DNA of 64,000 nt, taken from the NCBI RefSeq assembly GCF_000143415.4, contig NW_003314261.1, positions 3,402,880 through 3,466,879 of the forward strand, written 5' to 3'. A program made the position numbers and the translations under genes. Below are positions 29,914 through 36,048 of the stretch, piece after piece (positions within the stretch are counted from its first letter, which is position 1; every line of letters begins with the position of its first letter). The stretch is from Selaginella moellendorffii. Taxonomy: Eukaryota > Plantae > Lycopodiophyta. The notes under the pieces are model-generated. The model had not been told where the DNA came from and ran no database searches. It saw nothing but the letters and a program-made list of their open reading frames with translations.

Positions 29914-32900
29914 ATGGGAGTTCATGGATTATGGGAGCTCTTGGCGCCAGTGGGGCGGCGCGTGTCGGTGGAGCTCCTCGGCAACAAGAAGCTGGCGATC
30001 GGTGAGCTTGTGATTCGCGAGCTTGGGATTTCTCTCCAGCTGTTACAAGTCTTCATCTCTTTGTTTCTAGATGCCAGCATTTGGATCATCCAGTTTCTCA
30101 AGGCTATGCGCGATGATCGTGGAGAAGTGATGCGCAATGCGCACCTCCTGGGATTCTTTCGCCGGATTTGCAAGCTCTTGTTCCTCCGCGTCAAGCCTGT
30201 GTTTGTCTTCGATGGTGGCACGCCATTCTTGAAGAGGAGGACTGTGATTGCGAGGAGAAGGCAGCGAGAGCAAGCACAGTCGAAAATCCGCAAGACGGCT
30301 GAGAAGCTACTGCTGAATCACGTACGTGTGTGAGTTTCATTCTCAGCGTCTCTGACTCTCTTGTTTCATTTTTTCTTGTCGCAGCTAAAAGCAAAGAAGC
30401 TCGAGGAACTCGTTCGTGAGGAGCAACCAAATGCTCCAGACCAAGCACGAGCAAATGGAGAAATTCCTTCGAGCTCTTCTCAAGCCAAAACTTCTTCTGA
30501 CCAAGAAAATGCCGACGCATTGTAAGTTTCCAGTGATTGATGTTCTTGTTTTCTATCGTGGTTTTCATTTTTGTTTCATCTCAGGTTGACAGCTTCTTTA
30601 GCAAAAGAGTGGGAGGAAGATGGTGCCATAGACTTGGATTCTGGCTCCGAGGAACAACAACAAATACTCGTAAATCCAACGGCCCTTTAGATCTGTGAGT
30701 TTGCTGATCATCATAGTCAGTGTCTATCAGTTCATGTTGATATTTCCATAGCTGTTGTGTTTGTCTTGCCTTGATCGTCGCTGGCTTCCTTCTTGCTTGG
30801 GTTTGGAAATTCGTTCTGATCTCGTTATTCTTGTTTTCGGCAGCCTGTGGTTAACGGAAAAGTTGATCCCGAAGTTCTTGCGTCGTTACCGCCATCCATG
30901 CAACTTCAACTCTTTGACGAGGTTCGGATCTATACTGTTGCGTGTACGCTCGTTAATCTTACCTTCGCAGATGAGGGAGCAACTTGTTGCAGAAAATCGA
31001 CAGAAGTTTGAGAAAGTTGCCAAGGTGTGTAAGATTTGACATTCTGTAGTGTGCTAACGATATTTTTTTTCAGGCACCTTCTTCGTTTTCAAAACTTCAG
31101 ATTGAGGCTTACTTAAAAACAGTAGCCTTTCGCCGGGATATCAATCTCGTGCAAAAAGCGGCTGCGAACATAAGTAAAGATGGTGTTCCGAGCGTTCGAA
31201 TTGCTTCAGAAGCCAATCGCGAGTATATTTTCTCGACGGAAGCTGGAAAGAAAAAGTATGGCATGTTTTATTCTCATTTTCCTAATAGCCCTTTGCCTTT
31301 TGTGGCAGGAGCCAAGATGGGGTGCAAAATGTCGAAGAGACTACTGTGAAGCAGATGTCTAAGGACATAGAAGAAATGGGAGCAGCAGATAGGAGCACTG
31401 TTCAGACATATCTCGATAGTAAAGGGAGAAAACGAGTTAGCAGGATCAGGGGAATGGGTGTTCGGATGACTCGTGATTTACAGTGGAACTTATATCTTAT
31501 GAAAGACAAGGCATCTCAAAGTAAAGAAGACGAAGTGATAGAACTTCCAGCAGACGACGAGAGCTACGCATTTGAAAAACTGGTTTCTGAAGATCAAATA
31601 GCTGTTGAAGGAGATGGTGACGAAACCAATGTTTCAGCTGGGCAGACTAGTAGTACAGGAATGAGGGTCTCGTTCGTCGATGATGGCAGCCTCCAGCCCG
31701 ACGAGCTTTTTGCAAGGTTGGTTTCGGAAAGCCAGCCGGATGAAATTGAATGGGAGGAAGATTACGGAAGTGATGCACGAATATCTTCCGCCAGAGAAGC
31801 TCAAGATGAAGCAGGATCTGGCAGTCTTTCTCGTTTTCAAAGAAATGACGTGATTACTGAGACAGGGGCTCAGAACTTCCAGGTTTCGTTTGTGGACGAT
31901 GGTAACCTTGAGGTTGACGAGACGTTTCAAACTTTGGCTCGTGGTCAGGAGGACGAAGAGATCGACTGGGAAGACGACGGTCACGAGGTGGTGTCAGTCT
32001 GTGAACCTGATGCTCGGAAACAGTCTAAGATGATCGGTATTGGAGATTCTGCTTTGAAAACTACCGGTGTCATGGAATTAAACGGGAACAAACAAGCTGA
32101 AATTCAAGCAGGTTCTACTGTTCTCAATCAAGGTGAAAGATACGAGCGTACGAAAGACATGCAGGCTGATAGTCACCCTCCTCAAGCTGATAAAGTCCTG
32201 CCTGACGCTGAAGAAGTTGAATGGGAGGAAGATGATAATGTCGCACAAAATATTTCCGAGAACACTTCGCTAGTGGACGTTGGCGAGCCAGACGCCACGA
32301 AAAGTGAAGAAAACCATCCGCTGGTTTCAAAACCGGACGATGACAAAGGCACTGGAGGGGAAGAAGTTGCACGGAACGTTTCTCCTGGTAAATTGATTGA
32401 GCAAAAACCGGACAACAAGGACTCATGCAACATTGAGCATGGAAAGCTTACTGGAGTATCCGACGAACAAGCTCAGATTGAAGAAGCAATTCGTCGAAGC
32501 CTAGTGGACTTTGGACTTCAGAAAGCTTTTAAGCCTCTTACCATACAAGAGCCAGACTCTGTGAAGCATGGCGCAGTTCAGGACAAAGAAGAATCTGAGC
32601 GCTCACGTAAAGGAAAGGCAGTTCTCGACAACACAATTGAAAAAAAAGCTAATGAGTTGGAAAACACTGAAGTAGTCCTTGATTTGGATCAAAGCAGGAA
32701 GGCAACGATGATAACAGAGGATGAAGAACGGTTTCTCGATGCTGAGGACAGAGCAGCTCGGCACGCACGGATCAACGAGGAAAGGGAAAACTTGCTACAA
32801 GAAGAAGCGGAGCTTCGAGCAGAGAAAAAGAGAAACGAACGTAATGCGGAGACGGTTACAAATGAAATGTTTGCCGAGTGCCAGGTAGCTTGTTTCATAT

Positions 32901-34765
32901 GGGAGCTAACTCTTATTCTTATTACGTAGGAACTACTTCAACTGTTTGGGATCCCGTATGTGGTAGCACCCATGGAAGCTGAAGCACAATGTGCCTTCAT
33001 GGATGCAGAAGATCTCGTCGATGGTGTGATTACGGATGATTCGGACGTGTTTCTTTTTGGAGGCCGCAGTGTCTACAAAAACATATTCGATGGCCACAAA
33101 TACGTCGAAACTTACTACATGAAGGTAAGCTGTCCATTTACTAATTTTTGTGACTCGTTTACTTTTATAGGATGCAGAGTCTGATCTCGGTTTGAATCGA
33201 GATAAGCTGATACGGATGGCCATGCTACTTGGCAGTGATTATACCGAAGGAATAAGGTAATATCAATCCGTCAAGTAGTTTTTCTCTCGCGTCAACATTG
33301 CTGTGTTTCAGTGGTATAGGAATTGTGAATGCCATCGAGGTTGTGAATGCCTTTCCTGAAGAGGATGGGCTGCAAAAGCTTAGAGACTGGATAGAGTCTC
33401 CGGACCTTATGCTCCTTGACAAGGCCCAGGGTGTATCTCGAAAATCGACCAAGAAATCGCAAGATAATCTCGATGGGAGTGATGACGCTGGCGTGGAGCT
33501 TGACAAGAGAAAAGAAATATTTATGCACAAACACGTAAGTTTTCTTGCTTTCTTTCGTAAGCAGCATTTCGGTCTTGTTCGTTTAGCGTGCAGTAAGCAA
33601 GAACTGGACGATCCCTTCTTCTTTTCCCAGCAAAGCTGTAGTTGAGGCGTATGAATGTCCTCAAGTAGACAAGTCGAAGGAAACCTTTTCGTGGGGTCGG
33701 CCTGATCTCGACTTACTTCGGAAGTAAGATATCACGCAATGTTACAACTGGCTTAATGTTTTTAACGTGACACAGGTTTTGCTTTGAAAAATTCGGATGG
33801 ACAAAGGAAAAAGCCGATGAACTTCTAGTTCCAGTTCTGAAAGAGTACGATCGTCGTGAGGTAAGATCGTACCTATACTTGGCTTGTGATTGCAATATCT
33901 TTGATTGCAGACGCAACTACGAATCGATGCGTTCTACAGCTTCAACCAGCGATTCGCGAAGATCCGAAGCAGCAGGATTCAGAAAGCCGTCTCTGGGATA
34001 ACGGGGCAAACACTGCCGGAGATGATTTATGGTGCCATTCCAGCCACGAAGAAGACAAGGAGGATAAAACCATCGGACGAAAACTCTGCTCCGAAGCCAA
34101 GGAAGAGAAAAGCGACAGCTGCTGGGAAAAAAACTGAAGCAGCTCAAAGGACGCCGCGAAAACGTCAAGCAAGAGCCAAAGGTGGAGCCGCAAAGGATAC
34201 AGAGGCGCAGGTTCCGGAAATCACAACACCCGCAGAACGATCACTGGACGAAACACCTGAAGATGGCGGCGCACGAGAGTTTGTTTCAACGGCGGAAGGA
34301 TCTCAGTCGGAAGACCGAGAGTTCGTTCCAATGGAGGAGGACATTGCAGCTTTCGAGGCAGCAGAAAAACCGTCGGGAGGAGGAGGATTTATTTTGGAAG
34401 ATCCAGAGGCTCGAGAGTTTGCTGCTCCGAGAGCACACGCATCAAGTGGAGGAGGATTTATTCTAGAGGACTCGGAAGATCTTCGTGGTCCTACAGAGGA
34501 GGACCTCGAAGCTTACGAAGCAGAAGAAATGGGCGAGATGGAAAGAGGTGGAGGATTCATTGCGGAAGATCATCCTGGAGATGGAGAAGTTCGTCGCCAA
34601 GAGGAAAATCTGGAAGAGTTTTCCCTGGATCGTCCCGAAGCTCCGGAAGAAGAAGATCGTCGCGAGAAACAATGGAGAGACGAAAGAGATGGTGACGAAG
34701 AAAGGCGCGATCCGAGCTTGCTGGCCATTCCAAACTTTCGAAGAAAACGCAAAAGCAACGATTAG
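29914..34765 (+). CDS. UVH3: XPG/RAD2 structure-specific endonuclease (nucleotide excision repair)
   Basis: [10 protein letters not shown]...DASIW...[11 protein letters not shown] (XPG-N); [10 protein letters not shown]...[11 protein letters not shown] and [10 protein letters not shown] (XPG-I/H3TH); UBM-like [14 protein letters not shown]; UIM-like IEEAIRRSL; PIP box QLRIDAFY; long acidic spacer. Confidence 0.96.
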
Positions 34766-34827
34766 TTTTGCTTTAATGTGGCCATTTAATTAAGGGTTTA
34801 GGGCTCTCGCCCTAGAGCAGAGGAGTT

Positions 34828-36048
34828 ATGGCGACCTCGGCTTGGACGATGCCGCATTCTTCGTCCTCGTCGCTGCGATGCGTCGTCGATGGCCTCCATC
34901 CCAAGAACAAGGTACATAGATTAGGCGCTGCTTGCCGGAGGAGCTTAGTTTTGGCGAGAGCGCGAGAAGAGAGACGAGGGCTTCTCTGTGAGCAGTGGGG
35001 TGTTGGAAGCTCTGGCCGTGAGTCGAGGCCGTCGGAGGCTGGATCGCTCCTCTTGGAGCCCGCGGGAGTGTTGCTCCAGCAGCGCATTGTATTCCTCGGA
35101 TCGCAGGTAGCGAAAGTTTTTACAAATTTTCATTCTCTTTGGACGTTTCTTTTGTTTTTGTTCTTGAAGGTGGATGATGTTTCTGCCGATCTTATCATCA
35201 GCCAGTTGCTCCTTCTCGACGCTAAAGATCCAACCAAGGATATCAAAATGTTTATCAACTCGCCCGGTGGCTCAGTTTCAGCTGGTAAGCTGCAAGAATT
35301 TTTTTTCGAGAGTTTGGTTCTCCTTCCATCTTCTGGCCAGAGTTTTGGTTCTCTTTTTATCTTCTGGCTAAGCATTTGACAGCTTCCAGGGATGGGAATT
35401 TATGATGCTATGAAGCTCTGCCGTGCGGACGTCTCAACTATTTGTTTCGGGCTAGCAGCGTCGATGGGGGCTTTTCTGCTGGCTTCTGGAACAAAAGGAA
35501 AGAGATATTGCATGCCAAATGCTCGTGTCATGATCCATCAACCACTGGGAGGTGCCGGCGGTGTGGTAAGTAAAGCTTCCTTTCTCTTAATTTTGAGACT
35601 TTTTTAGTCTTTTCGTCGCATGTCTGCTGAGACTTTATATTCGTGTCGCTTGTTAGGCAATCGACGTTGGGATACAAGTGAGAGAGATGATGTACCACAA
35701 AGCAAAGCTCAACAAAATCCTGTCTCGCCTAACTGGAAAGTCTGAAGAGCAGGTTGCTTGTATTAGACTTCTATTTGTTCAAATGCCTGAGACTGGAAGA
35801 TTTTTATTTTGCAGATTGAAGCTGATACGGACAGAGACTACTTCATGAATGCGTGGGAAGCAGTCGACTACGGCCTGGTGGATGGTGTTATTGACGACGG
35901 AAAGCCGGGGCTTGTAGCACCAATTGGCGAAGCAAAAGAGCCTCCAAAGACTCGAGTGTCTGACTTCTGGACTATAAAGGACGGCAAAAAGAACAGGCCT
36001 TCAGAGGACACACAAGCGGCTTCCGAGAAAGAGAAAGCGGCTGTCTAG
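34828..36048 (+). CDS. CLPP3: Plastid Clp protease proteolytic subunit, ClpP3-like
   Basis: Transit peptide; [10 protein letters not shown]; FINSPGGSV; [11 protein letters not shown] (Ser); VMIHQPLGG (His); DTDRDYFM (Asp); C-terminal [12 protein letters not shown]...PPKTRV.DFW typical of ClpP3. Confidence 0.9.

Follow-up and report, generated by a model that had tools for sequence, protein, structure and literature searches.

The XPG/UVH3 (ERCC5-type) gene in a stretch of 64,000 nucleotides from Selaginella moellendorffii (contig NW_003314261.1, positions 3,402,880 to 3,466,879 of the forward strand; this whole stretch is called the window below) encodes a DNA repair nuclease whose disordered C-terminal tail holds three copies of a short glycine-rich peptide. 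The copies resemble the segment by which human XPA binds ERCC1, and the peptide recurs in the tails of other streptophyte XPGs. Judged from the sequences, it is certainly a real and strongly conserved linear motif in a disordered tail, one that is functional and under strong purifying selection. Its most likely function, to which we give slightly better than an even chance, would be to dock the central domain of ERCC1. ERCC1 is the likeliest partner because it is the sole established ligand of a GGGF-Φ-acidic peptide (Φ being a hydrophobic residue) and belongs to the same pathway and complex.

The initial annotation of the window had placed three such peptides at 34373-34570, in an acidic disordered tail past the nuclease domain and the PCNA-interaction (PIP) box, and the translation, Pfam and AlphaFold2 all agree with it (Table 1). 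The core G-G-G-F is present in all three copies, the residues directly after the phenylalanine are I-L, I-L and I-A, and E-D follows in each of them as a downstream acidic cluster. Copies 1 and 2 are separated by 14 amino acids and copies 2 and 3 by 24, and all three sit 3' of the XPG-I domain and the PIP box and 5' of the basic C-terminus. If the first glycine of the motif is numbered 0, so that +4 is the residue directly after the phenylalanine, Selaginella has a variant form, with isoleucine instead of cysteine at +4 and leucine or alanine at +5; the stretch GGGFILE is identical in copies 1 and 2 and in human XPA. The annotation had also described similar segments, EEDIAAFEA and EEDLEAYEA, ahead of two of the copies; both are present, and both are modelled by AlphaFold2 as short helices, where other plants have an upstream Y-L.

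Pfam places no domain over the tail of P0001, the NCBI protein that corresponds to this gene (see below). The single-sequence AlphaFold2 model of the tail has a mean predicted local distance difference test (pLDDT) score of 54.9, and most of the tail, all three motif copies included, scores below 50. The tail is 286 amino acids long; from its composition 0.0011 occurrences of GGGF[ILVMCF] are expected and 3 are observed, and three copies were reached in none of 20,000 composition-preserving shuffles. In copy 1 the two Selaginella sequences have glycine runs of unequal length, S-GGGG-F in the window (34373-34390) and SS-GGGGG-F in P0001 (residues 1213-1220). With the tails 98% identical, this difference probably reflects the other haplotype or another accession, and it shows that additional glycines are tolerated ahead of the core.

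To judge from its domains, the gene is a member of the XPG/Rad2/UVH3 nucleases of the FEN1 superfamily, with a long spacer between its two nuclease halves and, C-terminally, a PIP box and a basic end. A search of 1.8 billion representative proteins gave a single near-identical match to the window tail, P0001, which is the NCBI entry 'DNA repair protein UVH3 isoform X1' of Selaginella moellendorffii (1342 amino acids); it is 98% identical over the tail and has the same three motifs. In tblastn, residues 1-1342 of P0001 align across 29914-34762 of the window. Pfam recognizes XPG_N at residues 1-97 (E 8e-30) and XPG_I at residues 824-905 (E 9e-27) of P0001, with a spacer of about 700 amino acids between them, and these domains, together with the mapping of P0001, support the earlier naming of the gene as XPG/UVH3. 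An open frame of 858 nucleotides (33905-34765) closes the multi-exon gene, the ATG of which is at 29914. The C-terminal FRRKRKSND is a likely nuclear localisation signal, and equivalent ends, [LM]RRK[KR]R, are conserved among plant XPGs.

Expression was checked with Logan transcript contigs from four independent studies, which were placed on 32900-34900 of the window. The contigs are spliced, with five GT..AG introns absent from this interval, and those from all four studies cover the last exon without a gap or an indel. Therefore, the three motif copies are present in the mature mRNA, and both a gene-model artefact and an intron that excises the motifs are ruled out.

Conservation in other plant UVH3 proteins had been set beforehand as a point on which the proposal could be refuted, and practically all complete streptophyte XPGs have kept the motif. 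The land-plant pool consisted of 153 fetched XPGs of at least 1200 amino acids, with 231 GGGF occurrences. GGGF is present in 142 of the 153 proteins, and 228 of the 231 occurrences fall within the last 450 amino acids. The remaining 11 proteins are truncated or mis-joined models, or carriers of GGFC. Three XPG entries, P0193 and P0195 (Corchorus) and P0257 (Ipomoea), are joined to a drug/metabolite transporter (Pfam EamA) or have a transporter-like end; these are probably gene-model run-ons, and they account for some of the seemingly motif-less entries.

The 231 land-plant copies are alike well beyond the core. Position +4 is cysteine in 224 of them and isoleucine in three. Upstream, -5 is aspartate or glutamate in 180, -4 is tyrosine in 197 and -3 is leucine in 188. 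Downstream, +5 is L, M, V, A, T or I in 192, and acidic residues (D/E) are found at +6 in 185, at +7 in 205 and at +9 in 172. The streptophyte consensus is [DE]-Y-L-x-x-G-G-G-F-C-Φ-[DE]-[DE], in one to four copies per XPG.

Conservation within the tail was ranked by the 5-mers that are shared among 92 non-redundant complete streptophyte tails. The most widely shared 5-mer is GGGFC, found in 89 of the 92, while words from the PIP-box region are found in 80-85; GGF[CILVM] is present in all 92. From one plant lineage to another, the remainder of the tail cannot be aligned. In the search of representative proteins, every full-length match has the motif except for two C-terminally truncated models (Arundo and Spirodela). 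The carriers include the liverworts Marchantia and Riccia, the moss Physcomitrium, Selaginella, the fern Adiantum, Amborella, monocots including orchids, Brassica and many other eudicots, as well as the streptophyte algae Chara braunii (LMCGGGFCADEDDE) and Closterium (RLHGGGFCVGEEQ). No element of the tail is better conserved than the motif over about 500 million years of streptophyte evolution.

For comparison with XPA we used residues 67-80 of the human protein, which we take to be KIIDTGGGFILEEE. The plant consensus and this peptide agree at the hydrophobic residues at -4 and -3, at GGGF, at the hydrophobic residues at +4 and +5 and at the acidic residues at +6 and +7, and in such a residue-by-residue comparison the likeness to XPA exceeds the four-residue core. 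The two hydrophobic residues three to four positions upstream are I-I in XPA and Y-L in the general plant consensus. Both XPA and copies 1 and 2 of Selaginella continue from the core with I-L and then an acidic run. Both peptides also come from core excision-repair factors at the repair bubble, in each case from a disordered segment. There are differences as well. The carrier is the 3' nuclease XPG rather than the scaffold XPA, the plant XPGs have one to four copies whereas XPA has one, nearly all plants except Selaginella have cysteine at +4 where XPA has isoleucine, and the acidic run has two to four residues in plant XPG as opposed to seven in XPA (E78-E84). Binding to ERCC1 has been demonstrated for XPA, whereas for the XPG copies we infer it from sequence.

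The ERCC1-binding core of human XPA is 72-GGGFILEEEEEEE-84 (PMC2034474). The smallest ERCC1-binding peptide is XPA 67-80, whose complex with the ERCC1 central domain was solved by nuclear magnetic resonance (PDB 2JNW; PMC4710682). The TGGGFI part is essential, and the substitution F75A abolishes ERCC1 binding (PMC2034474, PMC3488251). The glutamate run is contributory, Gly72-74 make a U-turn in the ERCC1 groove, and the dissociation constant is about 0.5-1 µM (PMC3488251). The groove of human ERCC1 is formed by R106, Q107, G109, N110, L139-S142, R144, N147, H149 and R156 (PMC2034474). The GGGF motif of XPA is both required and sufficient to bind ERCC1 and to bring in ERCC1-XPF (PMC6320978). 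As the initial annotation held, the Selaginella peptides match this published core (PMC2034474, PMC3488251).

Two other docking motifs of XPG invite comparison. Like the PIP box, through which XPG docks on PCNA, the motif is short, conserved and encoded by the C-terminal exon; the PIP box has another consensus and another partner, and it is less widely kept word for word than GGGFC. The segments of XPG/Rad2, XPC/Rad4 and UVSSA that bind the p62/Tfb1 pleckstrin homology (PH) domain are also short, acidic and disordered, have an aromatic anchor, come in several copies and serve the assembly of the repair complex. However, their anchor is F-x-[ED]-V, as opposed to G-G-G-F-C/I-Φ-D/E here, and in animal and yeast XPG they are part of the spacer, as opposed to the C-terminal tail in plants. 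A PDB sequence search with the tail returned nothing relevant, in a library whose length limit exceeds the 14-residue XPA peptide chain. An ESM Atlas feature search matched the N-domain only to generic XPG_N clusters and gave nothing usable for the tail, and regular expressions for ERCC1 signature words found none in the window and the 80 XPG loci fetched (1 Mb).

If the XPG tail does dock ERCC1, the following mechanism may be envisaged. XPG is already bound to TFIIH at the repair bubble, and its tail motif would dock ERCC1-XPF (UVR7-UVH1 in Arabidopsis) onto it; Arabidopsis ERCC1 may be well conserved at the groove residues. In organisms that lack XPA, the 3' nuclease XPG would thereby recruit the 5' nuclease or license its action, and having more than one motif copy may add avidity. 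ERCC1 as the partner, this mechanism and the link to the loss of XPA are inferred. The proposal touches two questions that the literature describes as not settled. It had been noted at the outset that plants are without XPA, and the literature agrees and states that the compensation is unknown (PMC10810185, PMC12707071); reviews from 2020-2025 and a dedicated 2024 study list the excision of damage without XPA in plants as unresolved (PMC7761550, PMC10810185, PMC12707071). In addition, 5' incision by ERCC1-XPF requires that XPG be physically present (PMC8888383, PMC12873601), and how its presence enables the cut is stated to be unclear in the XPG field as well (PMC8888383).

An XPA-type peptide on XPG would be one concrete candidate mechanism for both questions, that is, for repair in XPA-less plants and for the XPG-licensed cut. 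It also makes the plant XPA question directly testable with peptides, point mutants and the existing uvh3 lines. If the proposal is true, a docking motif can move between scaffold proteins while the groove of the partner stays fixed, and one would predict the motif on yet another protein in other XPA-less lineages, such as the chlorophytes, red algae and kinetoplastids. A full-text literature search, with most subscription journals outside its coverage, turned up no mention of the motif in any organism's XPG.

The distribution outside the streptophytes was examined in 80 intron-free metagenome XPG loci obtained with an XPG-I profile scan, whose full open frames were read and clustered; the clusters were placed phylogenetically alongside named proteins that a profile search had returned. 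Exact look-up identified L002 as Chloropicon roscoffensis, a cluster of 21 loci as Ostreococcus and L078 as the ascomycete Cadophora. The Micromonas-like and Bathycoccus-like labels come from tree position and GC content only, and several protist cluster labels from tree position only. The presence or absence of XPA was taken from Table S1 of Kose et al. 2024, whose proteomes number 2,132.

The patterns are mixed. The chlorophyte clade (Ostreococcus, Chloropicon and the Micromonas-like and Bathycoccus-like clusters) lacks XPA, and its XPGs have short tails and no GGGF-Φ. These proteins are complete, as shown by MMETSP transcripts of the same length that are marked complete and by the NCBI Chloropicon model. 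The Mamiellophyceae-like XPGs (L014-L020 and L048-L050) end 40-45 residues past the position of the PIP box and have lost the entire C-terminal tail, any basic C-terminal signal included. In the diatom clade, Nitzschia inconspicua and six relatives, all seven XPGs have one to six acidic GGGF-[LFVMI] copies, and these are in the spacer. XPA is absent in the diatoms Phaeodactylum, Thalassiosira, Pseudo-nitzschia and Fistulifera and present in Fragilariopsis. Nannochloropsis (full-length L059/P0407), which lacks XPA, has two spacer copies. An unlabelled marine clade (L051, L046 and P0393) and the unplaced marine XPGs P0403 and P0428 have tandem repeats of up to six copies. Among 35 protist copies, those of the diatoms and Nannochloropsis included, +4 is hydrophobic (L/F/V/M/I) in 33 (94%), and positions -7 to -3 are about half acidic.

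Fungi, which have XPA, have no GGGF-Φ motif; ascomycetes have a conserved [DE]D[LM]AGGF with two glycines and chytrids GGGGF[AS]IK in a non-acidic context. The fish Astyanax mexicanus, the one species concerned, has two XPA genes and one tail copy, VAFGGGFICSD, which lies 79 residues past the PIP box and is followed by a run of glutamates (shuffle p about 0.002). Mammalian XPG tails may retain a weaker remnant with two glycines. In total, the XPG motif was found in three of the four XPA-less lineages sampled, at two different positions, and in one of the four XPA-containing lineages sampled. The relation between XPA and the motif is thus suggestive and is not a clean anti-correlation. The anti-correlation proposed in the initial annotation holds in part, with the diatoms and Nannochloropsis (spacer copies) in its favor and Ostreococcus, Chloropicon and one fish that has both XPA and a copy against it; in its strict form it is rejected, since the chlorophytes have neither XPA nor motif and the fish has both.

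Several of these observations weigh against ERCC1 docking as a substitute for XPA. Because the chlorophytes manage without XPA and without GGGF-Φ, XPA-less repair needs no XPG motif in general, and because a fish with XPA has a tail copy, the motif is not specific to XPA-less lineages. A two-glycine form, GGFC, is all that is found in a few XPGs or copies, in orchids such as Dendrobium and in Escallonia. The upstream D-Y-L of the plant motif has no counterpart in XPA, and +4 is an almost invariant cysteine in plants where XPA has isoleucine; the cysteine and the D-Y-L may mean that the plant motif is tuned to a different surface.

This last point leads to the alternative that survives best, namely that the motif is a real docking peptide for a partner other than ERCC1, such as a TFIIH subunit (the p62 PH domain, XPD or XPB/p52), RPA or a plant-specific factor. 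Its likeness to XPA would then be a convergence on a glycine turn with an aromatic anchor. The disordered regions of XPG are hubs for TFIIH, and acidic stretches with an aromatic anchor bind the p62 PH domain (PMC12873601); the C-terminus of human XPG cross-links to XPB and p52 (PMC8888383). The invariant plant cysteine at +4 and the D-Y-L at -5 to -3 are foreign to XPA, and the chlorophytes repair their DNA without the motif, all of which would fit such a partner. However, the known p62/Tfb1 PH-binding motifs are FIEV, FEDV and FVEV in acidic stretches (PMC12873601), and neither the plant F-C-Φ-[DE] nor the Selaginella F-I-L-E fits F-x-[ED]-V. The p62/Tfb1 PH motif was rejected for this reason: the third residue after the phenylalanine is glutamate in all three window copies and D/E in the plant consensus, not valine or another hydrophobic residue. 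Furthermore, what has been published as the determinant of ERCC1 binding is GGGF with a hydrophobic residue and then acids after it, and TGGGFI is reported from no other mammalian protein (PMC3488251), so that it would be specific rather than generic. We regard a partner other than ERCC1 as rather unlikely.

It is quite improbable that the motif acts within XPG itself, by folding back on the nuclease core, or as a regulator, through modification, degradation or a redox switch at the cysteine. A cysteine at +4 in 224 of 231 copies would be odd for a purely hydrophobic anchor, and the copies lie between the PIP box and the nuclear localisation signal, in a tail that looks regulatory. However, Selaginella and the fish have isoleucine there and the protists L/F/V/M/I in 33 of 35 copies, which means that hydrophobicity and not a thiol is the shared property; in addition, motifs that dock another molecule typically vary in copy number and place, as this one does, with one to four copies in plants, up to six in protists and a location in either the tail or the spacer. 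That the copies arose by chance in a low-complexity tail rich in glycine and acidic residues, or are a functionless lineage-specific tandem duplication, would fit the acidic, disordered nature of the tail and the near identity of copies 1 and 2, which could be a recent local duplication, but this is hardly credible: chance or low complexity is refuted by the shuffles, none of which reached three copies, and by a conservation that makes GGGFC the top word in 92 tails and has kept it from Chara to angiosperms amid unalignable sequence.

Two histories fit the distribution. Either the streptophytes and the ochrophytes gained the motif after XPA had been lost, as a compensation, or an ancestral tail motif was retained and became weightier after the loss of XPA, while the chlorophytes lost the tail altogether. 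The different positions of the motif, tail in one group and spacer in the other, suggest convergence in the case of the first history; the second would account for the order of PIP box, motif and basic end that streptophytes and the fish share. The initial annotation had XPG absorbing the scaffold role of XPA. Because the anti-correlation is imperfect, this is one possible history, and an older contact between XPG and ERCC1 is another. Going further, one may suppose that GGGF-Φ on XPG is an old and widespread ERCC1 dock, carried on the tail by streptophytes and at least one vertebrate and on the spacer by diatoms, eustigmatophytes and other marine protists. It would then be the reason why the presence of XPG licenses 5' incision, and once XPA is lost, ERCC1-XPF would be recruited mainly or solely through it. 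We offer this wider proposal tentatively and consider it more doubtful than docking itself.

Table 1. Features of the XPG/UVH3 gene in the Selaginella moellendorffii window.
Feature	Position	Strand	Basis or remark
XPG/UVH3 (ERCC5-type) gene, ATG to stop, multi-exon	29914..34765	+	tblastn of P0001 and Pfam
XPG N-terminal nuclease domain	29914..30330	+	short in-frame intron near 30004-30072
XPG-I nuclease region	32930..33254	+	exons 32928-33122 and 33169-33254; Pfam XPG_I, spliced-contig borders
Last exon, including short 3' untranslated region	33909..34790	+	PIP box, disordered acidic tail and C-terminal basic signal; spliced contigs
PIP box QLRIDAFY	33914..33937	+	fits PCNA-interaction consensus Qxx[ILM]xx[FY][FY]
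Short acidic amphipathic helix EEDIAAFEA before copy 1	34334..34360	+	AlphaFold2 helix 143-149 of model
Motif copy 1, GGGF-I-L-acidic	34373..34402	+	window translation
Motif copy 2, SGGGFILED	34445..34471	+	window translation
Short acidic helix EEDLEAYEA before copy 3	34496..34522	+	AlphaFold2 helix 196-209 of model
Motif copy 3, RGGGFIAED	34544..34570	+	window translation
Basic C-terminal end FRRKRKSND	34736..34762	+	likely nuclear localisation signal, function from sequence only

The XPG spacer has some conserved elements of its own. A segment RIAS[ED]xxRE[YF][IV][FL] (residues 275-290 of P0001, about 31200-31250 of the window) has been conserved across plants, fungi and marine protists. A non-acidic GG[FWY] follows within 10-40 residues of it in chytrids, Mucoromycota and Micromonas-like algae, and plants are without this element; it was judged distinct from the motif, being non-acidic, and was excluded from the motif counts. 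The spacers of ascomycete XPG/Rad2 have a conserved [DE][DE]D[LM]AGGF-x(5-10)-LPPW about 350 residues upstream of XPG-I, with two glycines only; this element was seen in L061-L065, L073-L079 and P0289 (Cadophora malorum). Residues 194-218 of P0001 (about 30850-31020 of the window; also in P0240 and P0049) are a segment that scores under the Pfam cut-off and recurs in Selaginella, Marchantia, Amborella and many angiosperm entries.

The neighboring gene lies close by. A multi-exon ClpP protease gene (34828-36048 of the window, + strand; Pfam CLP_protease on two exons, E 6e-26 and 1e-08) begins about 40-60 bases past the 3' end of the XPG mRNA at 34790.

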